The notes beneath the pieces were generated by a model, which did no database searches, was not told where the DNA came from, and saw nothing but the letters and a program-made list of their open reading frames with translations. Shown piece by piece: positions 2,449-62,507 of a stretch of 64,000 nucleotides of DNA (within the stretch, counting starts at the first letter, position 1; the number at the start of each line of letters is the position of its first letter). The position numbers and the translations under genes are program-made. The stretch lies in sequence record NC_049340.1; one strand, 5' to 3'.

Positions 2449-3234
2449 TTAACTTGGTTTTGTTTTATCCACGGTAACAACTTGTGATTTAGTTTCGGGG
2501 AAAAAATTATTATTTTCTGAATGTAAACTATTTATTTTTGATTTAACCTCAGCACCAAATCCTTTAAATATTGGTTTAAGTGGTTTAAGAACTGATACGA
2601 AACTACACACGGTTGCTAATCTACTTGTCCATTTTTCAATCAATTCTGCAAGGGTTTTTATTTCATCATTAAGTTTCTGTAGTGCGGTCATATTATCATT
2701 TCCAACAACTGCTGGTTGTTGTGATTTATCCTCACGTCCTATTGAAATATTATCCTTTGCTAAGTGTACTACTTGGTTACTACCTGCATTCTTAATAAAT
2801 ATTGTATTATCAGGACGAATAATAAATGTACTATTTTTATTATTCTTTTCAAGTTCTAACACAACACCCTCACTTTCAGTAAAACTAACTCTAACTTTAC
2901 CTTTGAGGTTATAACGTTCTAGGTCTTTTTCTAGTAATATTGATGCTGTTGTATAATCATCTTTCTTAACTTTACCTTTGTATGTACTTCTCTTTCTATA
3001 CCATACAGGCATATAAGCAACATTATATGGAAATTCAACGAATACAATTTCACCTTGTGCTGGTAGGTCGTGTTCTATTATATCTTGTTTTGATTCTGCC
3101 CATGGAATTAATTCAACATCCAAATCATCAAAAACAGTTTGTACACGCACTTTAATTCGACCAGCTTGTAGTGGGTCATCCGTTTGCACAACTACACCAA
3201 AAAATACTTCACTATTATTAATTTTTTTAAACAT
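2449..3234 (-). CDS. Baseplate hub/spike protein with gp5/Vgr N-terminal OB fold
   Basis: FFGVVVQTDDPLQAGRIKVRV...IPWA signature. Confidence 0.75.
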   Translation of the reverse strand: MFKKINNSEVFFGVVVQTDDPLQAGRIKVRVQTVFDDLDVELIPWAESKQDIIEHDLPAQGEIVFVEFPYNVAYMPVWYRKRSTYKGKVKKDDYTTASILLEKDLERYNLKGKVRVSFTESEGVVLELEKNNKNSTFIIRPDNTIFIKNAGSNQVVHLAKDNISIGREDKSQQPAVVGNDNMTALQKLNDEIKTLAELIEKWTSRLATVCSFVSVLKPLKPIFKGFGAEVKSKINSLHSENNNFFPETKSQVVTVDKTKPS

Positions 3235-3242
3235 ATTGTATC

Positions 3243-4448
3243 TTAATTATAAACGTTACCAAGGTCTCCACCAGTTCTTTGGTTGTGCTTTAAACTTGGT
3301 ATATCACTCATTTGACCTAGTGTTTGTCCTGCATTTATAACATCATCAACACCAAATCCATAAACATTACCTAAATATAAACCACTAACAGCACCTCGTA
3401 TTCTTTCTATTGCATCAGATGCTGTTGCTGTACCGAAGTCTTCAACTTTAGTACGCCACTTATCAACATCAAGAAAGTCATTTACATTTACTTTGGTTCT
3501 AATAATATCCACACCACTACGACTTAATAGGTTTCTTTTAGAGAAAAATGAATCATCTGTAACAACATTATTTACATTTGTGGTAGCCATTGATGCTAAT
3601 GCTTTACTTCCAATTTGTGCGTTACCTAATAGTGATTTAAATAAACCACTTATATCATATTGTTCAAATTTAATTGCCAAGTTATTAAGGTTTGCATCCG
3701 ACCTATTATTTGAAACACTTTCAAAGAAAGCACCACCACTAGGTGCATCGAATTGACAATAACCTAAATCAAATAGTGTGTGATTTAATTGAGTGATATT
3801 CGTATTTTCAATTGTTTGTAGAAATTCTATAGATGATGCATTCAAATCACTAAATACTCTATAATCATATACGAATATTGACATTGAAAACTGCCTTAAA
3901 TTCTTTGGTAATATCCACTTTCTATTGTGGTGGTCATATGCTATAGATTTATACATTTGCGCAATACTACCAATTTTATTATCTACAGTTTCAAGGCATA
4001 AAATATTTAGTTGATGTTCTTTATAAATTTCCTCGAATGGTTCTGTATATAATTCTTGCAATCCCTCAACATCCTGAAAAATCCATGGAGTTATTGAATT
4101 TACTTTAGAAAGTACATTAATAAACCTTTTAAGTAATTCATACTTTTCTGTATATCCAATTCTTTTTAGGTATGCTAGAGCAGAATCAATATAAGTTTCA
4201 TCAGCAAGTAAACCACTTGTTGCATCAAAATGAAAGAACAATTTAAATCCTGAATATGTTGGGTCTGTAAGTACTTTAAACGTATCAAGAGAATTATCAA
4301 TATCAGATACTACATTAACAAAGTTCTCTATTCCGTAATTAGAATTGTAAAGAATATTTTTATTTTTGTAGTTTAATATTTTTGAATCGGTTAAACGTTT
4401 TATCAAAGATTTTTGACCCTCAGAAATTGGTGTTAGTAAATTAGACAT
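3243..4448 (-). CDS. Putative tail-tube-like/baseplate protein
   Basis: Context upstream of gp5-like gene; late-type motif upstream; tube-fold-like pattern judged by eye. Confidence 0.4.
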   Translation of the reverse strand: MSNLLTPISEGQKSLIKRLTDSKILNYKNKNILYNSNYGIENFVNVVSDIDNSLDTFKVLTDPTYSGFKLFFHFDATSGLLADETYIDSALAYLKRIGYTEKYELLKRFINVLSKVNSITPWIFQDVEGLQELYTEPFEEIYKEHQLNILCLETVDNKIGSIAQMYKSIAYDHHNRKWILPKNLRQFSMSIFVYDYRVFSDLNASSIEFLQTIENTNITQLNHTLFDLGYCQFDAPSGGAFFESVSNNRSDANLNNLAIKFEQYDISGLFKSLLGNAQIGSKALASMATTNVNNVVTDDSFFSKRNLLSRSGVDIIRTKVNVNDFLDVDKWRTKVEDFGTATASDAIERIRGAVSGLYLGNVYGFGVDDVINAGQTLGQMSDIPSLKHNQRTGGDLGNVYN

Positions 4449-4493
4449 AGGTTTGTTTTATACTATGTATTATATAAAACAATTATACAAAAT

Positions 4494-5987
4494 ATGCTTA
4501 TAAACGTAACACAACAAGATGCATCAGTAACATTATCATATGTTAAGAATAATCTTATAGAGGTTAAGACCTATCCAGTTTATCAATATAATGGTATAGG
4601 TACATATGATTATCGTATTGCTAGATATGATGGTGACCCTGATATCGTAAATAACTTGGTTCATTATAAAGATGATAAGAAAGTTAAGCGTGTCATGTCA
4701 TATAAATTCGATTTTGATACACTAAGAGAATTTATCACACAAGTAATACCTGAGGAAGATAGAAATGAAATATTCACACTAGAAATGCCTGGCGCATATA
4801 AATGTGATATTGAAATTGCTGTAGGTGATGGTGAGATATTCCCTGACCCATATTTAGCCGAAATGGTTATTGATAGTATTCAAATAACCGCACCTAACCT
4901 AAATACGGTAACAATTACATGTAATCCAAGAGTTAAAAAAGCTGGTACACCTGAGGGTGATAAACAAATAAATGATATTGAAGATGCCATAAATAAGCAT
5001 TTTGAACAAGTTGATTTTGTTAAAACATTAACTGATAGGATTAAGTATTCACATATTGTATATGATACGGAAACTGAAATGTTAGAACGTTGGTGGCGAT
5101 TAATTAATACAACATTACATGCTGTTGGATTTTGGAATGGTAGTGGATTTGATGTTCCATACTTATGGAATAGGTGTAAAAAATTAGGTGTTGATGTTGG
5201 TATGGGTTCACCAACTGGTGAAGTATCTAATCGTGAAATGTGGTGTAGACATAGACATATTGTTGATGATATGCAGATTGTTGAAAACTTCTCACATGAT
5301 TTGGGAACAAAACAATCACTTTCATTAGATTATATTAGTAATAGAATTTTTGGGGTTGGTAAAATACCATATGATGGTAGTTTTAGTGACTTATATAATG
5401 GTTGTATTATTAGATATATGACGTATGGTGCTGTTGATACCATATTACAACAATTAATTGAACAAAACCGAAAATACTCAGCAGGTTCTGAGGCGATGGC
5501 ATATTATTGTAAAATACCGATTGTTGATGTTGGTAAAACAACTGCATTAGTTCACGCTGTTATTTGGGATGAGTTATATAAGCAGGGTAAGATAAATGCT
5601 GAGGAATATTTCAAAAAAGAAAAAACACCGTATGGTGGTGGTTTTGTTAAACAGCCAACACGAAAGTTTTGTATGTATCCAGTTGGTGTTGATTTTTCTG
5701 CACTATATCCAAGAGTTATACAAACATGTAATATATCTTTTGAGAATTATATGGGTAGAGTTCGTGATAAAAAACATGCTGAGGAATTACGTGCGCAGGG
5801 ATATTTTGTTGCTGTAAGTGGAAACTATTACAAGAATGATAAAACATATTGTTTAAAATCGGTACAAGATAAGTTTCTATCTGAGCGATATTTGTATAAG
5901 GACTTACAGTTTGCAATATGGCAAGAGGTTGTTCCAACACTAGAGGCTGAATTAAAACGTAGGGGAATAAACCCAAAGAAATTATAA
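4494..5987 (+). CDS. gp43A: DNA polymerase family B, part A (3'-5' exonuclease, palm motif A, first fingers helix)
   Basis: DIE, FWNGSGFDVPYLWNR, YGAVDT, YGGGFVKQP, DFSALYPRVIQTCNISFE. Confidence 0.9.
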   Translation: MLINVTQQDASVTLSYVKNNLIEVKTYPVYQYNGIGTYDYRIARYDGDPDIVNNLVHYKDDKKVKRVMSYKFDFDTLREFITQVIPEEDRNEIFTLEMPGAYKCDIEIAVGDGEIFPDPYLAEMVIDSIQITAPNLNTVTITCNPRVKKAGTPEGDKQINDIEDAINKHFEQVDFVKTLTDRIKYSHIVYDTETEMLERWWRLINTTLHAVGFWNGSGFDVPYLWNRCKKLGVDVGMGSPTGEVSNREMWCRHRHIVDDMQIVENFSHDLGTKQSLSLDYISNRIFGVGKIPYDGSFSDLYNGCIIRYMTYGAVDTILQQLIEQNRKYSAGSEAMAYYCKIPIVDVGKTTALVHAVIWDELYKQGKINAEEYFKKEKTPYGGGFVKQPTRKFCMYPVGVDFSALYPRVIQTCNISFENYMGRVRDKKHAEELRAQGYFVAVSGNYYKNDKTYCLKSVQDKFLSERYLYKDLQFAIWQEVVPTLEAELKRRGINPKKL

Positions 5988-6038
5988 ATTTTTACTAACA
6001 TTGTTTAATACATTAAAACAAAAATAATTTTATTCAAA

Positions 6039-6878
6039 ATGGAAAGTACACAAATCGTAAAATTAAAAAACGTAAAGTTAAGTGAACTACAGACAGCATT
6101 CAAACGTTCTTTATCTATTGGTGGTGAAACATTAAATTTTAAAATCACACCAACATCAATAACAAATGTAGCTGAACATTCAAGTCAATCATTATATAAA
6201 AAATGGGAATTGTCTTTAGGCGATGTTTGTGATAGTGTTGATGGTCAATTCAGAGAATTAAAAGTTGCTATCTATAGTGGTAATGAATTTGTATCAAAGA
6301 TTTTAGGATTCTTTGGACAATTAGCTGACTTAGAAATTCAACACGAAAATGGTAATGTTAATAAAATTAACATCATTAAGTTAGATGAAAAAGGTAAAAG
6401 ACTTTTAAGGATTGCATTAGTTACGGCATCTGTTACATCTTCATATAAAGAAATTGATTCTGATATGGTTTCAAACATCTTTAATCCTGATATGGAAACA
6501 AAGGCTAGTTTAATTTTATCACCTGATGATTTAAAACAATTAAATAACTTAGCTAAGTTAACAACGAATCCTGAGGAACAAACAAACTATATAACTATAA
6601 AATCAGAGAATGGTCAATTAGTTGCTACTGATGGTGCATTTGATATTGCATTACGTGATAGAACAGAAGAGTTGGATGCTATTGAGATTGATAAAGAATT
6701 ATTCTCATGTATTGAGCATGAAAATTATACTGCATCTGTTTATGACCTTGGTGAGAGTGGTATGTTATTATTAAATTCTGAAAATTCAAATTCACAAATT
6801 GCTGTAGTATTATTATCTGATGCTGATGATTCGGTATCATGGGATGATTTTGAAACTGACACAAACTGGGATAATTAA
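6039..6878 (+). CDS. gp45: Sliding clamp, gp45-like
   Basis: Size, beta-rich pattern, LVATDG-like motif, position within the polymerase locus. Confidence 0.6.
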   Translation: MESTQIVKLKNVKLSELQTAFKRSLSIGGETLNFKITPTSITNVAEHSSQSLYKKWELSLGDVCDSVDGQFRELKVAIYSGNEFVSKILGFFGQLADLEIQHENGNVNKINIIKLDEKGKRLLRIALVTASVTSSYKEIDSDMVSNIFNPDMETKASLILSPDDLKQLNNLAKLTTNPEEQTNYITIKSENGQLVATDGAFDIALRDRTEELDAIEIDKELFSCIEHENYTASVYDLGESGMLLLNSENSNSQIAVVLLSDADDSVSWDDFETDTNWDN

Positions 6879-6906
6879 TTTATGTAGTTTATTCTAAATA
6901 TTATTA

Positions 6907-6925
6907 GGGCGCACTTCGTGCGCCC
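6907..6925 (+). terminator. Hairpin/terminator after clamp gene
   Basis: gggcgcac-ttc-gtgcgccc. Confidence 0.6.
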
Positions 6926-6948
6926 ATTCATTAACTAAAACTATATAA

Positions 6949-8004
6949 ATGAGAGCAGAAGATGTGAATGATAGAATACATGAATTGGAGTCTAAAATAT
7001 GCATTAATCCAATAAAATATTTTGATGATATTAACACATCATGTCTAACCGAATTTGAATTAATTTATTTCAAAAAGTATTTAACTGATTACATTTCGAA
7101 TAAGTTGAAAGATGGTGTTTTAATTGACCCAAAATCAAGAATCGGAATGAAGATGTTTAAGAATATTGAAATACTTTTGGATAAGTGTCTTTCTAGAGTT
7201 GAATTATATTCATGGAAACATTGTGACCATACAATAAAGGGGTTCTTGGTTTATAACAAAATAAAAGAAATAAGATGTCCTAATTGCGGAACACTACAAA
7301 ATCCACCAAAAAATATAAGTAGTTTTGTACATACATTTAATGATTTTAGAGTATATTTCAATGATTTATGTAATTCAAAACACACAAATATTTCAAGACA
7401 ATTAACGAATTTGAAGAAATATGGATATGCATCACATTTCTCAACAAAAGAGACTCGTGAAAAAATCCGAAAAACTAATCTTATTAAATATGGTGTTGAT
7501 AATCCAACAAAATATAAAGAAATAAATGATAGAATAATAGAAACAAAATTAAAAAGGTATGGTACATTAAGTTTTAATAAATATGTTAATGATGGAAACT
7601 TTGTTAGAAAGCAATATACATCCAAAGAATGTGAACAATTTCTATCTACATATATAACACCATTATTTAAATATTATGGCGTGGATGATAACATAATGTT
7701 TGGTGATAAAGAGTATTCTGTATTAATACCAAATACATTTAACGATGTACTAAAACACGTAACAATGTATGATTTTTATTCACCAAAATACTCTATTATT
7801 TTTGAATATCATGGTTCATATTGGCATAATAATGAAAAAGCCAAGATAAAGGATAGGGAGAAATTAGAATTTGCTAGAGATTATTTAGGGATTATGAACT
7901 ATTTCACAATATGGGATTATCAAGCAAAGGATAGTAAATTAATTAAAGAAGTACAGAACGAAATTATAAAAATAATAGATGAATATGAGAGCAGAGTTAG
8001 CTGA
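6949..8004 (+). mobile_element. Free-standing homing endonuclease, Vsr-like (EDxHD-type) C-terminal domain
   Basis: KYGVDNP/KRYG repeats; YDFYSPKYSIIFEYHGSYWH...TIWD. Confidence 0.75.
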
Positions 8005-8806
8005 ATACAAAACCATGGTAGGTTCGGAATATAATAACCTAATGCAAAAAAATGAACATGATGACTTAATGAACATTCTAATTGCTGGTGATTATACTAC
8101 AATGTCTGATGATGATTTGATAAAGACATACAAACATGCAAAAAAGATGCAAGATTTTTATAAGATGATGCAACTTTGTTGTAAGCTATTATGTAATTCT
8201 GTATACGGTGGATTTGGTACGGCATCATTACGATATTTTTTACAAGCTGTTGCATCAGATATTACTGCTGAGGGTAGAAATGTTACTCAGTTAGTTGATA
8301 AGATGGCAAATCAATATTTTCAAAAATCTTGGCAAAAGGATTCTAATTGGTTCAATGAGTTAAAAGATAAGTTTCCAAATATCATACCTGATTCATTACA
8401 AGCACCGCACCCAATCAAAAAAGACATATGTATTTATGCGGATACGGATAGTGTTGTTGGTGATTCTATACTAAGATTGTCTGATGGTAGGTCTATTAAA
8501 ATAGAAGATTTATTTAAAGAATCAAAATATACACATACAGACCATAAGGGTAATGAGTTTGCAACACCTACCGTTAATATACTAAATTATACTAAGGATA
8601 ATGAGTTATATTATGCGAAACCAAAACACATAGTTAGACATAAAGTATCCAAGGCAAAATGGAAGTTAAAGACCAAAAGTGGCAAAGAAATTATAGTCAC
8701 TAACGACCATTCTATGATTGTGTTTAGAAGTGGCGAACAACTAACAGTTAAACCAAGTGAAATACTAAAGACTGATAAAATTTTAGTTATTAAAGATGGT
8801 AGATAA
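7985..8806 (+). CDS. gp43B-N: DNA polymerase B part B, N-extein (motif B to YADTD) fused to N-intein (8450-8803)
   Basis: KLLCNSVYGGFG, ITAEGR, YADTD then SVVGDSIL...IIVTNDHSMIV (intein blocks A and B). Confidence 0.9.
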   Translation: MRAELAEYKTMVGSEYNNLMQKNEHDDLMNILIAGDYTTMSDDDLIKTYKHAKKMQDFYKMMQLCCKLLCNSVYGGFGTASLRYFLQAVASDITAEGRNVTQLVDKMANQYFQKSWQKDSNWFNELKDKFPNIIPDSLQAPHPIKKDICIYADTDSVVGDSILRLSDGRSIKIEDLFKESKYTHTDHKGNEFATPTVNILNYTKDNELYYAKPKHIVRHKVSKAKWKLKTKSGKEIIVTNDHSMIVFRSGEQLTVKPSEILKTDKILVIKDGR

Positions 8807-9839
8807 CATAAAGATTTTAATAAATAAACATAGAACAACAAAAGATACCAAATATCTTTTGTTGTTGTTTAATTTATATGAAAAATATCATAATATAATT
8901 TTACCTAGATGTAAAGTTACTGGCGGTCATATATATTGGTATGATACTCGATTCTCTTGGTATAATAACACATTAAATATAAAGGGAAAGTCCAGCTATT
9001 CAAATAAAATTGTTAATGGTAATAAGTATTATTTAACAGTATCTGAACATGGATTGTTTATTAAATTTGGTGACGATTTTAGTAGAATAAATAAACATAG
9101 GTTATTCAACACTATAAATAAATTAACTAAATTTTCTTTTGGCATAAATAACATTGATGCAAAAGCACAAAACAAAAAATGTGCAATAACATTGGATAAT
9201 ATGATTTCTAAATACGGTGTTGAAATAGGTACAGATAAATATAATGCCTATTGTGAAAAGCAAAGAATAACTTCAACTGATAAATATATTCGAAATAAGT
9301 TTGGTGAAGAATATTTAACAAAGGTTAAAGATGCTAAATCACATAATTTTAATTATTATCTTAGATTATCTAATGGTGATGTTGAGGTTGCCAAAGAATT
9401 ACATAAAAAATACCATGAGCAAAGAATTAATAATATTGGTTCAATTTCAAAAAATTCTTTACACTTATTTAATACAATAATAAATAAATTCAATATTTTA
9501 TCAGACTCATATTACGGTGAAAATGAATTTGGATTATATGATAAAGAGTTTAAGCGATATTATAAATATGACTTTACATCAACAAAATATAAATTCATTA
9601 TAGAATTTAATGGTGATGTTTTTCATGGAAATCCAAAAATTTATAATGAAACTGATAGACCAAATTTTTTTAATACTAAAAAAACATGTTCTGAAATATG
9701 GGCATATGATAAACAAAAAATAAATTTAGCTAAAGAGCATGGTTTTGATGTTTTTGTTGTATGGGAAAGTGAATTTAATAATGAATATATAGAACTAGTG
9801 AATAGATTGTTTAATACTATAAAACATAAAATAAAATAG
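8796..9839 (+). mobile_element. Free-standing Vsr-like homing endonuclease between the split-intein halves
   Basis: YDFTSTKYKFIIEFNGDVFHGNP...FVVWESE; own ATG and TAG. Confidence 0.8.
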
Positions 9840-9840
9840 G

Positions 9841-10821
9841 ATGGAATATTTATTTGATGAAATAGAATCAATTGAGTGTATAGGTGAATTTGAAAATGAA
9901 TTTGTATATGATATTGAAATGGAAGACGAATCACACACATTCATAGCAAATGATATACTTGTACATAATTCAAATTATTTAACATTTGATGAGATATTCA
10001 AATCAATTGATTGTGATTATGAAAATACGCCTACAAAAGAATGTGTTGATTTTATCGAATACTTCTTTAAGAATAAGATGAACGCAATGTATGATAAATT
10101 CCTAACAAAATACTATGATAGTAGAGGGTGTGACAACCATCATATTTTTGAATTAGAGGTTATTGGTGGGTATGGTGTATTTATTGCAAAAAAGAAGTAT
10201 ATCTTTAGTAAATTATGGGATGATGGTAACTATGTTGCTAGTAAAGGTGGATTGAAGACAACAGGTGTTGAAATTATTCAATCAAGTACATCAAATTTTG
10301 TTAGGAGTAGTATAAAAACTTTTGTAAATTTGATATTCTCTAAAAGAGGGAAAATATCTAGTGATTTATTCTTTAATATGTGTAATGCACTTAGACGTAA
10401 ATTAGAAACAGTACCGATTGATGATATATCTAAAATTAGTGGACTAAAGACATACGATAAATATGTTGTTGAGTGGAAAGATAGAATTATTCTAGAAAAG
10501 AAATGTCCAGCACCAGTTAGAGGTGCAGTTAGATACAATCATTTAATCTATCAAAAAGGTTTGCAGAATAAGTATGCATACTTAAAGAATGGTATGAAGT
10601 GTAAAATGTATTATGATAAGCAAGGGAATCCATTTGCATACCATGATGAATCATTTCCACATGAAATTGCACCACCAATATCTAGAGAAATTCAGTTAGA
10701 GAAATTAATATTTTCACCAGTAAAACGATTGGTTAGTGGTGGAATGATTGAGGGAAGTTTATCAAACATGGGAACTGGTAAGAATTTACCAAGTTTTAAG
10801 AACATGTTTAAGAAGAAATAA
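9841..10821 (+). CDS. gp43B-C: C-intein (9841-9969, 43 aa) fused to DNA polymerase B C-extein
   Basis: VYDIEMEDESHTFIANDILVHN|SNY; then FIAKKKY, LKTTGVEIIQSST. Confidence 0.9.
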   Translation: MEYLFDEIESIECIGEFENEFVYDIEMEDESHTFIANDILVHNSNYLTFDEIFKSIDCDYENTPTKECVDFIEYFFKNKMNAMYDKFLTKYYDSRGCDNHHIFELEVIGGYGVFIAKKKYIFSKLWDDGNYVASKGGLKTTGVEIIQSSTSNFVRSSIKTFVNLIFSKRGKISSDLFFNMCNALRRKLETVPIDDISKISGLKTYDKYVVEWKDRIILEKKCPAPVRGAVRYNHLIYQKGLQNKYAYLKNGMKCKMYYDKQGNPFAYHDESFPHEIAPPISREIQLEKLIFSPVKRLVSGGMIEGSLSNMGTGKNLPSFKNMFKKK

Positions 10822-10893
10822 TAAATATTTGGTGTTTTTATATTCTATACATAATATAAAGACATCAAATATTTAGAATTAAAAACAAACTAA

Positions 10894-12222
10894 ATGAAAC
10901 AATACAAGAACATAGAGGATGCTAGAGTTAGTATTCTAGAGGCTGTTAACCTTGGTTTATTAATTGAGAACATTAAACCATTAACAATGCAAGGTACTTC
11001 TACTAAGAAGCATTTAATTAAATTACAGAATGAGAATCAATTGACTTCAATGGTATCTGTTAGTACCGCAATTTTTGAGACTAAGCAAATACAAAACATT
11101 GATGAGCAATTAAAAAAATTCACCAACGAGGCTACAAATGCTATCTTAGACCAAGGTGTAAAGGCATCTATTGTTTATGCATTTGAATGTATTGAAAGAC
11201 AAAGACAAACTGAAATTACCGAAAGTGCATTAAGTACTTTAGATACTTTGGTTGCATTATCTGAGTCTGATATTAAAAATAGTGTTCGTGCTGGAAAATT
11301 AAATCCATTTAGAACATTACCATTTGTAACAAACATTATCGAATCATGTAAAATTGTTGAGGATGATGTTGTTGAAACAAATGAAACTGTTGTTAGTCAT
11401 CCAGTATCTTATATTGAAGAGTCTGAGGGCGGTGTGTTCTTTAGAAGTGGTGATAAAGTTTATTGTATTAATGAAAGTGGTATTCGTGAGACATCTGCAC
11501 CAAGTGAATCATTTTCATACTTATCATCAATTGTTGAGAGTTTAACATATGCTGACAACAAACTATCTTATGTGCATGAATCATTAGGTTCATTTGAGAT
11601 TGATAGTAAGGGATTAAGAAGAAAGAGTTCTGATGGTATTTTTGAATCATTTGATGCTTATGCATTCACAAACAAAATGAGTACTATCGTTGAGTCAATG
11701 AGTTACCGTGATGGTGTAGTTGGTAGAAGAGATAGAAAAGCTAATATTGCTGTATGTGATGCATTGGTTGCTGTTTCTGAAAACTTTTCTAATGTTGCAC
11801 AATTAGATAATGTATTTGAGGCAGTTAATAAACGTAGTGGTGATAAAGTTTTATTTGTATGTAACGAAAATAACTATCACGTATTAACTGTTCAATCAAT
11901 CAGACAAGCTAAAATAGTTGAATCATTTACTGATATTCGTGATGCGATTGCATTATTCGATAAGAAAGTAGGTGTTAACCTTAGTGAGCAATTATCTGAA
12001 TTAGTTGCTGAGGCTGTTTCTGATGATGCACAAAAAGTAAAAGACATTACAGAGTGTAAAGAGTTAATAAAAGGTCTAAATGAACAAAAGGTTGATTTAG
12101 AAAAAGAAATTTCTGAATGTAAAAATGAAGAAATTAGAGAAGAATTTGTTGATACTCTTAAATTAGTTGAACAAACTATTATTGAAACACAAACAAAAAT
12201 ACAAGAATTAACAAGTATTTAA
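10894..12222 (+). CDS. Hypothetical protein, probable internal head protein
   Basis: 442 aa; many [ILV]xE motifs; late-type motif upstream. Confidence 0.45.
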   Translation: MKQYKNIEDARVSILEAVNLGLLIENIKPLTMQGTSTKKHLIKLQNENQLTSMVSVSTAIFETKQIQNIDEQLKKFTNEATNAILDQGVKASIVYAFECIERQRQTEITESALSTLDTLVALSESDIKNSVRAGKLNPFRTLPFVTNIIESCKIVEDDVVETNETVVSHPVSYIEESEGGVFFRSGDKVYCINESGIRETSAPSESFSYLSSIVESLTYADNKLSYVHESLGSFEIDSKGLRRKSSDGIFESFDAYAFTNKMSTIVESMSYRDGVVGRRDRKANIAVCDALVAVSENFSNVAQLDNVFEAVNKRSGDKVLFVCNENNYHVLTVQSIRQAKIVESFTDIRDAIALFDKKVGVNLSEQLSELVAEAVSDDAQKVKDITECKELIKGLNEQKVDLEKEISECKNEEIREEFVDTLKLVEQTIIETQTKIQELTSI

Positions 12223-12223
12223 T

Positions 12224-12248
12224 AAAAAGCACCGATAGGTGCTTTTTT
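12224..12248. terminator. Intrinsic terminator
   Basis: aaaaagcacc-gata-ggtgcttttt. Confidence 0.8.
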
Positions 12249-12284
12249 CCAACAAAAATTAATAAATTAATAAATTATACAACG

Positions 12285-12647
12285 ATGAGTGAAGTAGTAA
12301 AAAAGAAGCGTAGAAAGAATTATTTAACAAGTGATGAAATTAGAGCCGAATTGCAGGTTTGTCATGTAAGGGATGGATTAACCAATAGGATGGTTGATAT
12401 GTTCTGTTTAATGATAGACAAAATACAAGCACCGTTTAAATATCCTAGCGATGATGTTAGGATGGATATTAGGTCATTTGCGATTGAGCAATTAGTTAAA
12501 AAATGGAAGTCATGTGATATAAACAGACCTAATTTATTTTCATTTTTCACACAAGTTATAAAGAATGATTTATATGCTGGATGGAACTCATATAAACGTG
12601 GTTGTGCTGATTTTTCATATAGCACAATATTCACGGATGATGTATAA
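12285..12647 (+). CDS. gp55: Late-transcription sigma factor, gp55-like
   Basis: KNYLT..., NLFSFFTQVIKN, matching the gp55 NPFAYFTQ region. Confidence 0.7.
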   Translation: MSEVVKKKRRKNYLTSDEIRAELQVCHVRDGLTNRMVDMFCLMIDKIQAPFKYPSDDVRMDIRSFAIEQLVKKWKSCDINRPNLFSFFTQVIKNDLYAGWNSYKRGCADFSYSTIFTDDV

Positions 12648-12662
12648 TAAAAACAATACTTT

Positions 12663-13253
12663 ATGTTTTCATTAGACCCAAGACCTGATTTATTCAGGAC
12701 ACGGTTGCCTGATAAATTCATAGAACCAAATATTTTAACTAAATATGATGCTTTTATAAAACAAAAACCTTTTGTATTTGATTCGTTTATAGATGTTATG
12801 AACGAATCAATACAATCTTTTGATATACCAGCATTTGGTTTTTCGGCAACAATACAAGATGGTAATCGAGATAATGCGCTTGGTGCTATAGAAAGAGTTC
12901 ATGTACCACATCAATCAGTACAAAAATTTATTGATAATACATTTACCATCACATTTAAACATACTGAGGCTTATATGTCTTATTGGTTTATGGTGGAGCA
13001 TTGGTTCAAGAAATATCAGTTAGGTAAGGATGGTAATAGAGTTCCAATGGATTTTTTGTTACTTGAATTACTTGATTATAAACTAAATTCTATTGTAAGA
13101 ATAAAATTTAATAAAGTTTTATTCACAGGTGTTGATGGGGTTTCATTTGCGTATAATAATATTGATAGGACATCTGATACATTTACGGCAACATTCCAGT
13201 ATGGTACATTACAACCAGTATTTGATATACCTACATTAAATATAAAAACATGA
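12663..13253 (+). CDS. Tail tube-like protein (gp19 fold)
   Basis: FTITF...W, LELLD, KF..V.FTGVDGVSFAY...FTATFQY pattern. Confidence 0.55.
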   Translation: MFSLDPRPDLFRTRLPDKFIEPNILTKYDAFIKQKPFVFDSFIDVMNESIQSFDIPAFGFSATIQDGNRDNALGAIERVHVPHQSVQKFIDNTFTITFKHTEAYMSYWFMVEHWFKKYQLGKDGNRVPMDFLLLELLDYKLNSIVRIKFNKVLFTGVDGVSFAYNNIDRTSDTFTATFQYGTLQPVFDIPTLNIKT

Positions 13254-13681
13254 CAGAATCAACCATATTAGAAAATAAAAAATTAATACACAACATATTA
13301 GATTTACAATCTGAGGTTATAAAAATAAACAGGGATGCTGTTACCATAGATAGACATGTTTTAGTTGAGAAACAATATGAAATGGATATTGATTTAATTT
13401 CTAAGGTTGCTTATGGTACTAATGAAGCGATTGATATTCTTTGTAAATTCAATGGAATATCAAATCCTTTAAGTATTAAAGCTGGTGATGTTATATTCAT
13501 TCCGAATCTAAATTCTTTATTCTCAAATATGAAGAAGTTGAACTATAAATCAATGACATTGAGTAAAAGTTCAGGTTCATTACTTAAAACAACTCTAAAG
13601 AGTTCACAAACAAATCCTAGTAAGAAACAACAACCATCAAAAAATTTCACAAAATCGAATGATGGTATAATTATATTCTAA
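13250..13681 (+). CDS. Baseplate wedge gp53-like/LysM-like protein
   Basis: IDLISKVAYG...ILCKFNGISNPLSIKAGDVIFIP. Confidence 0.7.
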   Translation: MTESTILENKKLIHNILDLQSEVIKINRDAVTIDRHVLVEKQYEMDIDLISKVAYGTNEAIDILCKFNGISNPLSIKAGDVIFIPNLNSLFSNMKKLNYKSMTLSKSSGSLLKTTLKSSQTNPSKKQQPSKNFTKSNDGIIIF

Positions 13682-14972
13682 TGATTAATAAATTCAAACA
13701 CACACTTCAAACAAATCCTATAGTTTTAAGACAGGATGATGATGAGTCTATATTTATTGAAGAACATGGTGGAGTTTATTATCCTTTAATTAGAGTAAAG
13801 GATACCGTAGTACCATTCACATCAATAGTTTCATTTAATTTAGAAGTTGGTACATCATTTTTACCTAAATTAACATTCTCTATTGATGATGATGATTTTC
13901 ATTTTAGAGAAACTGATTTTATTGGTGGTATTGACACATCAACAATATTTATAGGTTCTGCGAAGGATGATATTAATGAGCCAATAAAGAATGATTATTT
14001 AATTCTTAGTGTTACATCATCTGCTGGTAGTTCAGTATTAACATTTGAGTGTGAATTACATGTTCCTAAATTATATACATCAACAAATAGGGTTATAACT
14101 GGTAGTTCACTTGATGTTATTGAAGCTGTTAGTAAAGAATGTGGTTTAGGATTCACAAGCAACATACAATCGACATCAGATAGTATGAATTGGATTCAAT
14201 ATCAAAATAATATTGACTTTATACATGAGGTCGCATTACATTCATATATTGATAATGACTCATCAATTATGTTATTTATTGACCAATTTGCGAATTTATG
14301 TTTTCTTAATATTAAAGAAGCATTGAAAGGTTCTAGTTCACATACATTAGAGATTAATCCAGTTAATGGAAATCATCTTGAAGAGCCTATTAACTTGTTA
14401 TTAACAAACAATAAATTAGATACAGATAATCCAGCAAAAATATCATCATATACACCTATCAATAATTACGGTGTGTTAGCAAAAAAATACACATCACAAC
14501 AAAATAAAGTTGGTATTTCATACACAGATTATACACAACTAACGAATGTTACTGATACACAAAAAAAGTTCAATTAGATAATTCATCTACATTTACATTT
14601 AGTGGTTCAGAGAATGCACATCAATTTTTTATGGTTGCGCCAGCAATACACCAAAATAATAAGCAATTATTACAAGGTATTCAACATTTAATTAATATTG
14701 ATTGGTCGATTCAATCATTATTTATGTTTCAGGTGCTACCTATTGATATTTATAATATTGCTAAACGACCTTATAAAAAATCAACAAACACCACAGTTAA
14801 TTTGGATGAATTAACCGACCAAGAACCACAACAAACATCAAACTCACATACTAGAAATGAGCAGTTGAGTGGTGATTGTTTAATACTTGGTATAACATAT
14901 ACATACTTTAGAAAACTAACTAAAAGTAAGGAATCTAGACTTAGACAGAAGTTAAAAGTATTCAAAATATAA
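13681..14972 (+). CDS. Baseplate hub-like protein, two ORF-track pieces joined by a -1 frameshift at the A7 run 14561-14567
   Basis: Second frame is open from KVQLDNSSTFTFSG into the 14631 ORF. Confidence 0.5.
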
Positions 14973-37128: not shown

Positions 37129-37159
37129 AAAACACCACCCAAATTTGGTGGTGTTTGTT
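37129..37159 (+). terminator. Intrinsic terminator
   Basis: aaacaccacc-caaattt-ggtggtgttt. Confidence 0.75.
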
Positions 37160-37188
37160 TTATACATTAAAATAAAAACTTATACAAT

Positions 37189-60876: not shown

Positions 60877-62507
60877 ATGACCAATAAAGAATATATAGAT
60901 AAACTACAAAATAGATATGGTGATAAATATGATTACTCTAAAGTTGATTTTACATCATTTAGAAAGAGTGTAGTATTGGTATGTAATGATACTAGTGAAG
61001 AAATAGTAGTTAATTCTAGAACAATTCTTACAGGTGGTGATAAGAATAATACAAAAAACACAACAACAATAATAAAATTCCAAGTGATTTTTCATTAAGG
61101 TTAGAACTTATGCATGATGATAAGTATGAAATTATTAGTGAATATATATCATTTAATAAACCTGTTGATGTTATGTGTAAAAATCATGGAATATTCAATT
61201 CAACACCAAGAAAGTTATTGAATAATGTACATCCATGTAAAGCATGTAAAGTTGATAAAATAACAAAAGATTTTATTGAATTAATTGAACCTAAATTTGG
61301 TTATAAGTATGACCTATCTAAAGTTGTGTATACAAAAAAGAATTGTGATATTATACTAGGTTGTAAAGAGCATGGTGATTTTACAATAAATTCTAGAAAG
61401 GTTAGAGTAAATAAATCAACTACTGAATTATGTCCAACATGCTTAAATTCTAATGAAATAAAAACAACAAAATACAAAGAACGGTTTTCAAAATTATATC
61501 CTGATTATGATTTTTCTTTATTTGAATTTAAAGATACCAATAAAAATAAAGGTACTGTTATCTGTAAAGAACATGGGAAGTTTGAAAAAAGAATAGATAA
61601 ACTACATTATCAAGGATGTCCACAATGTTCAATGGAATCAATGGTTTCAAAATCCGAATTAGAAATATTAGAGTTCATTAAAGAAAATTATACAGGAAAT
61701 ATAATCCATAGTGATAGAAGTATTATACCGCCACTAGAGTTGGATATTTACTTACCTGAAATTAATCTTGCTATTGAATTTGATGGTTTATATTGGCATT
61801 CCACCGCAGTACAACAGGATAAAAAATATCATTCAAATAAAACCAAACAATGTTCTGAATTAGGTGTTCAGTTAATACACATATTCGAGGATGAATGGTT
61901 ACATAAAGAAGCCATAGTAAAGTCTAGAATAATCAATGCAATTAAACAAACACCTGAGCGAATATATGCACGTAAATGTGTTATTAAAGAGGTTACATCC
62001 ACAGAATCTATGAAGTTCCAAAAGGATAATCACATTCAAGGTGGTGTTGGTTCTAAATATAAACTTGGGTTGTATTATAACGATGAGTTGGTATCATTAA
62101 TGACTTTTGGTAACCTTAGAGTAGTTAATGGAAGTAAATCAACACCAAACACATTTGAGTTGTTGAGATTCTGTAATAAACTAAACACAACAGTTATAGG
62201 TGGTGCATCACGTTTATTAAAACACTTTATAAAAATCATAAAACCAACTACGATAATTAGTTATTCAGACCGTAGGTGGTCGAATGGAAACTTATACAAA
62301 CAATTAGGTTTTGAATATGTACATACAAGTGAACCTAGTTATAGTTATGTAATAAATGATACACGTGAGCATAGGTTCAAATACAGGAAGAGTAATTTAG
62401 TTAAACAAGGTCACGACCCAAAATTAACGGAAAAACAAATAACAGAATCATTGGGATTATATAGAATATATGATTGTGGAACTGATAAGTGGATTTTAAA
62501 TTTATAA
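60877..62507 (+). mobile_element. Free-standing putative homing endonuclease (Zn-finger-like repeats plus Vsr-like domain); frameshift ~61050
   Basis: KYDYSKV..., CKEHGxF repeats, ELDIYLPEINLAIEFDGLYWHS, RIYDCG. Confidence 0.75.

Follow-up and report, generated by a model that had tools for sequence, protein, structure and literature searches.

Polymerase pieces and intein halves in motif C

The window analysed here, a stretch of 64,000 nucleotides, corresponds to the final 64 kb of the Tenacibaculum phage PTm1 sequence (AP019524.1), and a comparison of window positions 2979..13803 with this record revealed identical sequences. The family B DNA polymerase (PolB) is distributed over three ORFs, with an intein in two segments and several further genes and elements between them (Table 1). 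All polymerase and intein pieces were searched and aligned separately and were never read through the stop codons. Piece A matches phrog_2062, a split-polymerase family of 502 positions (E 4e-72), and covers positions 89-488 of the full-length profile phrog_262. The longest ORF of piece B1 starts at 7979 (7979..8806), and the GenBank start at 8015 is the better fit to the relatives.

Table 1. Features of the PTm1 polymerase locus in window coordinates
Feature	Position	Strand	Basis and remarks
PolB piece A (gp43A-like), exonuclease domain and motif A, 497 aa	4494..5987	+	Pfam DNA_pol_B_exo1, DNA_pol_B
ORF-237, predicted PCNA-like sliding clamp	6039..6878	+	between polymerase pieces A and B; outside the intein element
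GC-rich hairpin, 8-bp stem, 3-nt loop	6907..6925	+	between clamp gene and HEG1
HEG1 (ORF-238), second free-standing homing-endonuclease-like gene	6949..8004	+	immediately upstream of piece B
PolB piece B1 extein, motif B KLLCNSVYG to motif C YADTD	8015..8449	+	phrog_262 positions 497-583
N-intein, 118 aa + TAA	8450..8806	+	Ser1 codon at 8450, stop 8804-8806; TIGR01445
HEG2 (ORF-240), free-standing, predicted Vsr-like, 347 aa if start at 8796	8796..9839	+	phrog_22677, predicted fold; ATG 8796, TAG 9837-9839
Near-perfect hairpin, 14-15 bp	8834..8866	+	28 nt after N-intein stop, inside 5' end of longest HEG2 ORF
21-nt motif ATTGTTTAATACNNTAAAACA	9806..9826	+	3' end of HEG2, 15 nt upstream of C-intein ATG
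C-intein, 43 aa	9841..9969	+	ends ...ILVHN; TIGR01443
PolB piece B2 extein, 283 aa + stop	9970..10821	+	Ser+1 first (SNYLTFD...), codon 9970-9972; phrog_262 positions 580-834

The ORF of piece B1 reads ...ICIYADTD and continues from the Ser residue at 8450 through the N-intein to ...ILVIKDGR. The ATG of HEG2 lies 8 nt upstream of the TAA of this ORF and the two ORFs overlap by 11 nt; at the other end a single spacer base separates the TAG of HEG2 from the ATG of the C-intein. The three ORFs B1-IntN, HEG2 and IntC-B2 are located in frames 2, 0 and 1, each step being +1. The sequence and the ORF list thus confirmed the geometry of the initial annotation, which had described an N-intein of 118 aa, a C-intein of 43 aa and +1 shifts. 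It had also described an overlap of the TAA with the nuclease ATG; the ORFs indeed overlap, but the two codons themselves do not.

The element sits in PolB motif C between the codons for Asp and Ser (YADTD/S). Intein-less relatives (43B of contigs L014 and L015) read YCDTDSNYLTFD unbroken across this site, and the PTm1 exteins can be aligned with them gap-free on either side of it. The uninterrupted 43B of L014 shares 61% identity with piece B1, in an alignment that stops precisely at ...DTDS, and about 66% with piece B2, counted from residue S148 of the L014 protein. The uninterrupted 43B genes in L013-L015 cross the insertion site with no residue gained or lost.

Both segments were recognized by the intein models of NCBIfam, the N-intein by TIGR01445 intein_Nterm (43.8 bits, cut-off 24.5) and the C-intein by TIGR01443 intein_Cterm (23.8 bits, cut-off 15.6). 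In the Pfam model Intein_splicing they match the complementary parts 4-94 and 118-155. Against PF14890 the scores were 32.1 and 22 bits; neither half alone can be expected to reach the whole-domain cut-off of 35.8, and neither did. The best PDB match of the N-intein was 9hth (DNA-directed DNA polymerase chain, E 1.4e-9), which was also matched by the C-intein; the best matches of the latter were the entries 8cpo and 8cpn of the PolB16 intein (E 1e-5).

The N- and C-inteins of PTm1 were aligned with those of phages Aes508, CP21 and Lak-A1, and all class-1 catalytic positions are conserved across these four phages. The first-residue nucleophile of class 1 is present as the Ser directly after YADTD, and Ser occupies both splice junctions (Ser1, Ser+1). 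The block A sequence SVVGDS is common to the N-inteins of PTm1, Aes508 and CP21. Block B reads TNDH (T84-N-D-H87; TxxH), with T, D and H invariant in the four phages. An NX-like RH is found at intein residues 63-64; Lys or Arg followed by His is invariant in the four phages, and its equivalence to His68 of PolB16 is assigned by pattern. The C-intein contains block F VYDIEMEDESHTF and block G NDILVHN, and the positions VYDIE...H.F...NDILVHN/S are invariant in the four phages as well as in L016 and L019. Taken together, these sequence comparisons support the two segments as complementary halves of one class-1 intein.

The N-intein is devoid of cysteine and the C-intein has one non-catalytic Cys at position 13, which places the PTm1 intein outside the cysteine-less inteins in the sense of no Cys anywhere in the intein. 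Judged from the alignment, Cys13 of IntC is probably dispensable, since L019 has Gln and L016 has Glu there. The net charge is -14 for IntC and +9 for residues 51-118 of IntN. We dropped this charge segregation as an indication of a natural split since the cis mini-intein relatives have the same pattern.

Nuclease gene and neighbouring elements

The product of HEG2 matches phrog_22677 over residues 66-345 (E 3e-32) and has 49 homologues, mostly of about 350 aa. A phmmer search against the PDB sequences yielded nothing at E values up to 1 and there was no match in Pfam, so a link to Vsr had to be drawn from a profile comparison and the predicted fold. The model of the nuclease domain (residues 220-347) has a pLDDT above 90. 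The Foldseek top PDB matches were the Vsr structures 1cw0 and 1vsr (probability 1.00, target-normalised TM 0.54), and I-Bth0305I (3r3p) was found with a probability of 0.99 and a TM of 0.68; the E-values for these three entries were only 0.03-0.15. In the profile alignment (E about 0.2) D259, E270, H277 and D305 of HEG2 align with D51, F62, H69 and D97 of Vsr with identical spacings of 11, 7 and 28, and the four residues are invariant in 30 HEG2 homologues. By the criterion of PMC2677866, Vsr-like nucleases carry equivalents of Asp51, His69 and Asp97 together with an invariant Glu at the position of Phe62. Predicted fold and catalytic residues therefore support the assignment of HEG2 as Vsr-like, in line with the initial annotation, at weak sequence-level statistics. 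With 15 bits HEG2 is far below the cut-off of 98 of the Vsr model TIGR00632 and thus is not a Vsr repair enzyme.

The nuclease domain of HEG2 is predicted to share the fold and the D, H and D catalytic positions with I-Bth0305I and E. coli Vsr, and it has the invariant Glu of the homing branch (PMC2677866, PMC3239194). HEG2 differs from both in its N-terminal and middle parts, which are long and helical and contain KYG-type repeats, and it is free-standing, whereas I-Bth0305I is intron-encoded. Candidates for the start codon are the ATG at 8796 (longest ORF) and the TTG at 9054 (GenBank). Neither a second intein nor a close HEG2 paralogue was found within the window.

The second nuclease gene, HEG1, matches Pfam DUF7487 (29.9 bits, cut-off 27) and the 'homing endonuclease' families phrog_3339 and phrog_12131. 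Its core has a D-11-E-7-H spacing, with a weak BLASTP similarity to HEG2 (E 3e-4). The gene is absent in the relatives, where 20-60 nt are found instead. The predicted PCNA-like clamp gene between the polymerase pieces, ORF-237, is an addition of the present analysis. Its AlphaFold2 model has a pTM of 0.75, the Foldseek top matches were PCNA, 9-1-1 and viral sliding clamps (E 5e-10, probability 1.00), and the ORF is located at the same position in the relatives L013-L016, L019 and L006.

The hairpin behind the N-intein stop is terminator-like on both strands. The fold of 8800-8900 has a free energy of -19.3 kcal/mol (z -5.4), and none of 200 shuffled sequences was as stable. This hairpin would be a 5' UTR element only if HEG2 starts downstream, for example at TTG codons in the 3' arm. 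The region 6879-6960 with the GC-rich palindrome, which occurs once in the window, folds with -22.1 kcal/mol (z -3.9). RNA folds over the two junctions (8740-8840 and 9790-9890) were not more stable than shuffled sequences; the junction folds of Aes508, L006, L010 and Lak-A1 were not significant either, and L008 alone was mildly so. The 21-nt motif at the end of HEG2 has four matches in the window (842, 6000, 9806 and 37154) at 0.44 expected, all of them on the plus strand and 8-19 nt upstream of an ATG start; it is absent from the other loci compared. It is possibly an expression signal for the downstream cistron. A sigma-70 promoter scan was uninformative (44 sites at 55 expected).

Relatives of the locus and alternative explanations

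Six other loci show the three-cistron layout, in Aeromonas phage Aes508 (where the same three-piece polymerase is annotated), Campylobacter phage CP21, Lak megaphages and several metagenome contigs, and HEG2 homologues are located at the same position between the halves in L002, L004-L006, L008 and L010. Among the contigs related to PTm1 we found, in addition to the empty site (L013-L015), a contiguous cis mini-intein in L016-L018, which is 69-71% identical to the PTm1 halves. L019 is fractured with a decayed nuclease gene, and PTm1 itself is fractured with an intact one. This allele series is new here. The IntN of L019 is 62% identical to that of PTm1; the PTm1 IntC is 80% identical to the one of L019 and 71% identical to the cis intein of L016. 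The L019 halves are 283 nt apart, and because the gap holds only a 77-aa nuclease remnant (2472-2705) without catalytic residues, L019 cannot encode a contiguous intein. L019:2695-3027 was rejected as a candidate for the nuclease N-terminus, as BLASTP identified it as IntC and extein.

These data bear on the question whether the breaks in PTm1 are real. A contiguous intein with an in-frame nuclease could appear broken if two homopolymer insertions had created the stops and starts by sequencing or assembly error. If the A3 run (8791-8793) and the A4 run (9833-9836) were each one A shorter, the three ORFs would become one; the in-frame stops that close the frames lie at 8784 and 9832 and leave open only the windows 8787-8803 and 9835-9836. 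Since two single-base losses would do, the sequence of the locus by itself does not dispose of such an artefact; it is the comparative data that argue strongly against it. The isolate PTm5, a separate deposit, is identical to PTm1 over 8450-9972 and shows a 1-nt homopolymer difference nearby, at window position 10188; both isolates come from the same site and presumably from one laboratory pipeline. Two independent errors would have to fall exactly at both domain borders and be identical in PTm1 and PTm5. None of the seven three-cistron loci, PTm1 included, is fused, and their junction sequences are unrelated: in the six loci other than PTm1 overlaps range from -8 to -35 nt and spacers from 41 to 45 nt, the frame combinations differ and some spacers have stops in several frames. 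IntN ends with a stop of its own and IntC begins with its own start, on separate cistrons, in all seven loci and also in L019, which is split with nothing but a nuclease remnant in between. Most of the best IntN homologues end right after the N-intein (about 107 of the best 150 within 8 residues of the protein C-terminus, by table count), and PMC2677866 knows Vsr-like homing endonucleases as free-standing genes or as passengers of introns rather than as domains of inteins. We consider an artefact extremely improbable.

A truly split gene could also have lost splicing, with the intein halves retained as a non-covalent dimerisation module or the break simply tolerated by the polymerase. Non-covalent assembly has precedents in the split NrdA of phage Aeh1 (PMC3045599) and in the gp43A/gp43B split of the Aeromonas phages 25 and 44RR (PMC2988022), and wild-type Aes intein precursors splice only to about 30% in vitro (PMC11923092). 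However, Ser1, the NX-like RH, the TxxH of block B, the Asp of block F, the penultimate His, the terminal Asn and Ser+1 have all been kept, without variation even in distant relatives, and a 161-aa insertion inside the catalytic motif C hairpin would hardly be tolerated. A loss of splicing is thus very unlikely in our view. Some more weight, at a still clearly minor probability, is due to an explanation that concerns homing only: the intein would splice, and HEG2, inactive or silenced, would be a relic heading for the decay seen in L019. That decay occurs in this lineage, the very stable hairpin at the 5' end of the HEG2 ORF and the GC content of the gene (22.9%, the lowest of the locus) would fit to such a relic. 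On the other hand, HEG2 has full length compared with its family of about 350 aa, it keeps all invariant family residues (D259, E270, G273, H277, P280, D305 and W323), and hairpins upstream of nuclease genes are a normal regulatory feature of fractured genes (PMC2677866).

Intein models, intein-less relatives, the recurring three-cistron layout and L019 all bear out the initial reading of a fractured gene, an architecture defined by Dassa et al. 2009 (PMC2677866). We conclude that polB of PTm1 is very probably a genuine fractured gene, with a probably mobile element in motif C that combines a class-1 intein of the Ser1/Ser+1 type with a free-standing gene for a Vsr-like homing endonuclease.

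Known systems and proposed function

The closest parallel are the Aes123 PolB1 and Aes508 inteins of T4-like Aeromonas salmonicida phages. They share with PTm1 the host protein, the insertion point Y-x-DTD/S, Ser1 and Ser+1 and a canonical split (120 + 39 aa, compared with 118 + 43 aa in PTm1), and the crystal structure 9hth belongs to this system. The Aes508 locus has a similar order (gp43B-1, VSR-like ORF, gp43B-2), with a nuclease ORF of about 350 aa and a Vsr-like C-terminus between the halves, and its polymerase likewise comes as 43A and 43B, separated by a break that contains another homing endonuclease gene (PMC11923092). The identity between Aes508 and PTm1 is 33% for IntN plus five extein residues and 56% for IntC plus ten; for the former region PTm1 is 33-41% identical to Aes508, CP21 and Lak-A1. 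PTm1 belongs to another phage lineage (Shirahamavirus, with a host of the Bacteroidota), and its IntC has a non-catalytic Cys, unlike Aes. The first break holds the clamp gene and a nuclease with a Vsr-like core in PTm1 and a GIY-YIG Seg-like gene in Aes508, where 43B-1 additionally has a group I intron. For the Aes123 PolB1 fragments trans-splicing was demonstrated experimentally (PMC11923092), whereas the PTm1 intein is known here from its sequence.

CP21 PolB1, LCGC14 PolB2 and GOM-OPS-1 PolB2, from T4-like phages and marine sediment metagenomes, are cysteine-less, PolB-borne and Ser-dependent canonical split inteins of a class similar to PTm1 (PMC12707363); the PolB2 inteins are set apart from PTm1 by their allele name. 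CP21 has the same site and three-cistron layout as PTm1 (39% identity in the IntN and 46% in the IntC region), and it was chosen from this family as a split-intein candidate and characterised (PMC12707363); trans-splicing assays in the literature thus cover relatives from both Aeromonas and Campylobacter phages. The atypically split PolB16 OarG intein shares the PolB host and the Ser1 chemistry, and its NX-motif histidine follows Arg or Lys (PMC10189870), comparable in pattern to the RH of PTm1. It is split after only 15 residues, whereas the PTm1 split is at the canonical endonuclease-insertion loop. The first break of PTm1 resembles gene 43 of the Aeromonas phages 25 and 44RR, which is interrupted between motifs A and B without an intein and encodes two polymerase subunits (43A and 43B); one of these breaks harbours a free-standing homing endonuclease gene (PMC2988022). 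Halves of this kind make up the families phrog_2062 and phrog_1918. The corresponding gap in the PTm1 lineage contains the conserved clamp-like gene in addition, and that of relatives a dUTPase gene as well.

The loci of Dassa et al. 2009 (gp41-1 to -8, NrdJ-1, IMPDH-1 and DnaE from GOS metagenomes) contain N-intein, nuclease and C-intein cistrons on one strand as in PTm1 (PMC2677866). The nucleases are free-standing and Vsr-like or GIY-YIG; there, too, packing is tight and a stable hairpin lies near the nuclease start, with an RNA hairpin in the nuclease 5' UTR at 15 of 16 loci; it is clearly 5' UTR in these loci and inside the longest nuclease ORF in PTm1. The host genes named in the passages considered are gp41, IMPDH, DnaE, NrdJ, NrdA, terminase and DNA ligase, with PolB not among them. 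PTm1 differs from these loci also in the catalytic Ser1 and in the 3' end of the nuclease gene, which does not overlap the downstream cistron.

We infer that the intein splices, that replication depends on splicing and that the nuclease is active on a target of its own. The nuclease gene fills the loop usual for nested endonuclease domains, so that the intein is encoded as two cistrons. B1-IntN, HEG2 and IntC-B2 would each be translated on their own, from closely spaced cistrons. The second half of IntN, which is basic, and the strongly acidic IntC may then come together and fold as the HINT domain. Oxyester chemistry, consisting of an N-O shift at Ser1, transesterification to Ser+1, cyclisation of Asn43 and an O-N shift, would ligate the exteins and restore YADTDSNY in a gp43B-like polypeptide of about 430-440 aa. 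This polypeptide would work with the separate gp43A-like piece and probably with the clamp encoded in between. HEG2 would cut the intein-less alleles of co-infecting relatives, and repair would then copy the nuclease gene along with both intein halves.

The novelty implied by the initial annotation was overestimated. The split PolB intein of PTm1 is already known, as the depositors annotated the element in the public record; the GenBank labels of the polymerase and nuclease ORFs are "intein-containing split DNA polymerase precursor" and "VSR endonuclease". It also falls into a well-studied family of such phage inteins, and PolB split inteins with Ser1 and Ser+1 had earlier been characterised and engineered as ligation tools (CL, CLm and LCGC14; PMC11923092, PMC12707363, PMC10189870). 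Our literature search found no paper describing the PTm1 intein: PMC2993671 mentions neither inteins nor a split polymerase, and a jumbo-phage review names PTm1 for morphology and grouping only. For engineering, the PTm1 intein is a fairly divergent, uncharacterised member of the small Ser1/Ser+1 split class, in which reducing agents are unnecessary. Given how few members of this class have been tried so far, it merits consideration as a candidate, without being conceptually new.

In genome annotation, the PolB ORFs of PTm1, three in number, belong together as one enzyme and are neither pseudogenes nor frameshift errors. The chances appear evenly balanced that a single lineage of marine phages similar to PTm1 holds, at one and the same site, four stages of the route to gene fracturing that was proposed in 2009. 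This would supply a natural cis/split pair in which to study how an intein adapts to the split state, and also a mesophilic split intein of the Ser1/Ser+1 type, possibly efficient and orthogonal to the LCGC14 tools and those derived from Aes. For the evolution of mobile elements, the allele series illustrates how a free-standing nuclease gene may break a gene at its intein.

Identity of the element and its insertion site

Tblastn searches of phage records with the polymerase fragment and the nuclease ORF gave 100% matches to Tenacibaculum phages PTm1 (AP019524.1 / NC_049340.1) and PTm5. PTm1 163659-174483 corresponds to window 2979-13803 without a base difference, and, starting at record position 160681, the PTm1 features coincide with the ORFs of the window. 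In the depositors' annotation ORF-239 is called "intein-containing split DNA polymerase precursor", ORF-240 "VSR endonuclease" and ORF-241 "DNA polymerase". The initial annotation, which read this region as a split intein in PolB motif C flanking a free-standing Vsr-like endonuclease, is therefore a rediscovery of existing annotation. Its coordinates proved exact when sequence and ORFs were checked. The three ORFs lie in frames 2, 0 and 1, and the frames of the nuclease and the C-intein (IntC) are closed by in-frame stops at 8784 and 9832, shortly 5' of the respective ATGs.

Features of the split polymerase locus and its surroundings (window positions)
Feature	Position	Remarks
Motif ATTGTTTAATACNNTAAAACA (21 nt)	842-862, 6000-6020, 9806-9826, 37154-37174	+ strand
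Polymerase piece A	4494-5987	
ORF-237	6039-6878	between pieces A and B1; annotated hypothetical; AlphaFold2 pTM 0.75
GC-rich hairpin GGGCGCAC-TTC-GTGCGCCC	6907-6925	between ORF-237 and HEG1; single occurrence in window; genome 29% GC
HEG1 (ORF-238)	6949-8004	just 5' of piece B; DUF7487 and PHROG homing-endonuclease matches
Ser1	8450	directly after ...ICIYADTD
N-intein (IntN)	TAA at 8804-8806	118 aa, end ...ILVIKDGR
HEG2 nuclease ORF (ORF-240)	8796-9839	347 aa, TAG stop
Hairpin, near-perfect, 33 nt	8834-8866	14-15 bp stem; 28 nt past N-intein stop; -19.3 kcal/mol, z -5.4
C-intein (IntC)	ATG at 9841	one spacer base after nuclease stop; 43 aa, end ...ILVHN
Ser+1	9970	

The NCBIfam model TIGR01445 (intein N-terminal region) matched residues 159-248 of the first ORF with 43.8 bits (cut-off 24.5 bits), and TIGR01443 (intein C-terminal region) matched residues 21-44 of the third with 23.8 bits (cut-off 15.6 bits). 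On the Pfam Intein_splicing model (155 positions) the two pieces are complementary, the N piece at 4-94 and the C piece at 118-155. Among solved structures the N piece was best matched by 9hth, a DNA polymerase chain of 173 residues (E 1.4e-9), which is presumably the Aes PolB intein. For the C piece the best match was the PolB16 intein (8cpo, 8cpn; E 1e-5), and 9hth matched as well. A crystal structure of the Aes PolB intein has been reported (PMC11923092). Alignment with the counterparts from Aeromonas phage Aes508, Campylobacter phage CP21 and Prevotella phage Lak-A1 revealed as invariant Ser1, the block A Gly, a [KR]H pair and block B T-x-D-H on the N side, and block F VYDIE..D..H.F, block G NDIL.HN and Ser+1 on the C side. 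Assuming positional equivalence, the [KR]H pair seems to fit the NX motif described for Ser1 inteins (PMC10189870). Due to the one non-catalytic cysteine, IntC Cys13, which is not conserved in the related contigs L019 and L016, the PTm1 intein is Ser-dependent yet not strictly cysteine-free.

The full-length profile phrog_262 is tiled without loss by the three PolB pieces (89-488, 497-583 and 580-834). Syntenic metagenome contigs of PTm1-like phages (L013, L014 and L015), reached via the polymerase neighbour ORF-237, contain the second polymerase part as a single uninterrupted gene of 430-464 aa. Across the site L014 reads ...VIYCDTDSNYLTFD...; the PTm1 upstream extein is 61% identical to L014 in an alignment that runs up to DTDS, and the downstream extein is about 66% identical from SNYLTFD on. 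Since the exteins align to the uninterrupted gene on both sides, 8450-9969 is a clean 1520-nt insertion in motif C between the Asp and Ser codons. The intein profiles, the restored host sequence and the same split in relatives thus support the proposed fractured-gene architecture.

Evidence for the split state

Several lines of evidence indicate that the split state of the PTm1 PolB intein is real. The geometry would also permit a contiguous intein with an embedded nuclease whose apparent breaks arise from base-count errors, because one A fewer in the A3 run 8791-8793 plus one fewer in the A4 run 9833-9836 fuses all three ORFs, but such an artefact is very improbable. PTm5, which was deposited separately and differs from PTm1 at 6 sites in 10.8 kb, is identical over 8450-9972. 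The order PolB-IntN, nuclease ORF of about 350 aa, IntC-PolB recurs in Aes508, CP21, Lak-A1 and the contigs L006, L008 and L010, and in the Aes508 record the whole locus is annotated, including intein mat_peptides and a "VSR endonuclease domain". At every locus with this order the junctions are dissimilar: the nuclease starts -16, -11, -8, -8, +41 or +45 nt from the IntN stop, and IntC starts -35, -25, -17, -1, +1 or +42 nt from the nuclease stop. The frame combinations vary as well, and some spacers have stops in two frames. In L019 (region 2413-2694), whose IntN and IntC are 62% and 80% identical to those of PTm1, the halves are just 283 nt apart. This gap encodes only a 77-aa C-terminal nuclease remnant without the catalytic segment, matching HEG2 residues 285-342 (40% identity, E 7e-12), which rules out a contiguous intein at this locus.

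When the N-intein was used in an exhaustive HMMER search, 749 representatives reached E 1e-3 or better. Among the best 150 of these, about 107 end within 8 residues of the match end (manual count), 39 extend past the match and 4 are ambiguous. Of those that extend, many run on for about 320-340 residues, the size of IntC plus C-extein, and therefore look like cis mini-inteins. Experiments on related PolB inteins also speak against the artefact. In vitro, trans-splicing has been observed for fragments (120 + 39 aa) of the Aes123 PolB1 intein, a relative of that of PTm1 (PMC11923092); CP21 PolB1 and two metagenomic PolB inteins were picked as naturally split candidates, and LCGC14 was efficient (PMC12707363). 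With the PTm1 split intein annotated in its record and the family experimentally characterized and already in use as a tool, the novelty is low. The PTm1 intein itself is a fairly divergent family member with predicted splicing activity.

One of the six differences in PTm5 is a missing A in the A6 run at window position 10188. This deletion disrupts the last polymerase piece, which is thus annotated as two ORFs, and reflects a sequencing error in PTm5 or else a genuine inactivating mutation.

The nuclease, expression signals and the polymerase locus

Searches of HEG2 against Pfam gave no match, but residues 66-345 match phrog_22677 positions 73-351 of 353 (E 3e-32), and a word-indexed search found 49 homologues, mostly of about 350 aa, a few of them named very-short-patch-repair endonuclease by JGI. 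An AlphaFold2 model (30-sequence input) reached pLDDT above 90 at residues 220-347. The relevant Foldseek matches, although with weak E-values, are led by E. coli Vsr (1cw0, 1vsr; probability 1.00) and the I-Bth0305I catalytic domain (3r3p; 0.99). In the family profile D259, E270, H277 and D305 align with Vsr D51, F62, H69 and D97. These residues correspond exactly to the hallmark that Dassa et al. give for Vsr-like homing enzymes, down to the extra invariant Glu (PMC2677866). The predicted fold and the aligned residues are in line with the Vsr-like assignment made initially.

The deposited nuclease starts disagree (TTG at 9054 in the PTm1 GenBank record, the equivalent of 9201 in PTm5), and compared with the family of about 350 aa both look too short. 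The N-terminal 115 residues can be aligned solely with P0002, the closest homologue, whose alignment begins at residue 1 of the long ORF; the P0002 gene likewise sits between PolB intein halves. Both this alignment and the coverage of the phrog profile point to a start near 8796 rather than to the TTG at 9054. Three in-frame TTG codons lie within the 3' arm of the 8834-8866 hairpin. A hairpin before the nuclease start is typical of fractured genes (PMC2677866). The hairpin at 8834-8866 might attenuate the nuclease gene at the transcriptional or translational level.

From the anatomy and established class-1 intein chemistry we infer that the three cistrons would be translated separately and the intein halves would then associate. 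B1 would be ligated to B2 by Ser1/Ser+1 oxyester chemistry and Asn43 cyclization, restoring YADTDSNY, and the product would act with piece A. HEG2 presumably cleaves intein-less alleles, and repair would copy it along with both intein halves. The motif ATTGTTTAATACNNTAAAACA has 4 matches in the window (0.44 expected), all 8-19 nt 5' of an ATG start, and could be a promoter or leader element; it was not found in the other loci retrieved. ORF-237 and the C-intein cistron are two of the four genes preceded by it. The copy at 9806-9826 falls in the final codons of HEG2 and may be a separate expression signal for the last cistron.

As in Aes508, the polymerase is in three pieces, A being followed by B1 and B2. 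An intein-less split gene 43 is known in Aeromonas phages 25 and 44RR (PMC2988022). The ORF-237 model matches PCNA, 9-1-1 and viral sliding clamps (Foldseek E 5e-10, probability 1.00), which predicts a PCNA-like sliding clamp, and its position between the polymerase parts is kept in all PTm1-like contigs found. In L013-L015, piece A is separated from the clamp gene by a dUTPase gene and a small ORF; PTm1 has only a 51-nt spacer at this place. According to its profile matches, HEG1 is a second free-standing homing-endonuclease-like gene. It is missing from these relatives, which have 20-60 nt at that place. Its C-terminal core shows the D-11-E-7-H spacing of the Vsr-like family, while the match to HEG2 is only weak.

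Alleles and related interruptions

Some further genes were observed. In CP21 (L004:1515-5623) the polymerase is annotated as numerous small overlapping CDS and the ORF 5' of the N-intein stops a few bases inside the intein ORF, a sign that the record may contain frameshift errors or additional interruptions. The near-identical contigs L010 (6204-7850) and L011 (6204-7268) differ in a RecA/UvsX-like gene, intact with 354 aa in L011; L010 has a 307-aa ORF with intein matches followed by a 223-aa ORF, possibly a further case of intein insertion or gene fracture. In L008 (7511-9053), a contig that also bears a PolB fractured gene, a T5orf172/MUG113-domain gene adjoins a terminase large-subunit gene with intein matches. 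Window 61110-62507 encodes a 465-aa ORF with weak PD-(D/E)xK restriction-endonuclease-like matches (211-282) and a Mom-family domain (291-427).

The intein most closely related to that of PTm1 is found in P0059 (616 aa), present in three samples (L016-L018) in syntenic PTm1-like context. P0059 is a 43B gene (B1 and B2 in one) with a contiguous 169-aa mini-intein at the PolB site of PTm1 (L016:3836-5686), 69% identical to the N-intein and 71% over the C-intein region, and has a short linker in place of the nuclease gene. The PTm1 lineage thus contains four states: empty (L013-L015), contiguous mini-intein (L016-L018), fractured (PTm1) and fractured with a decayed nuclease (L019). The cis forms already show the same basic-N/acidic-C charge pattern as the split form, and could therefore be ancestors or re-fused descendants. 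The four states fit the model of Dassa et al.
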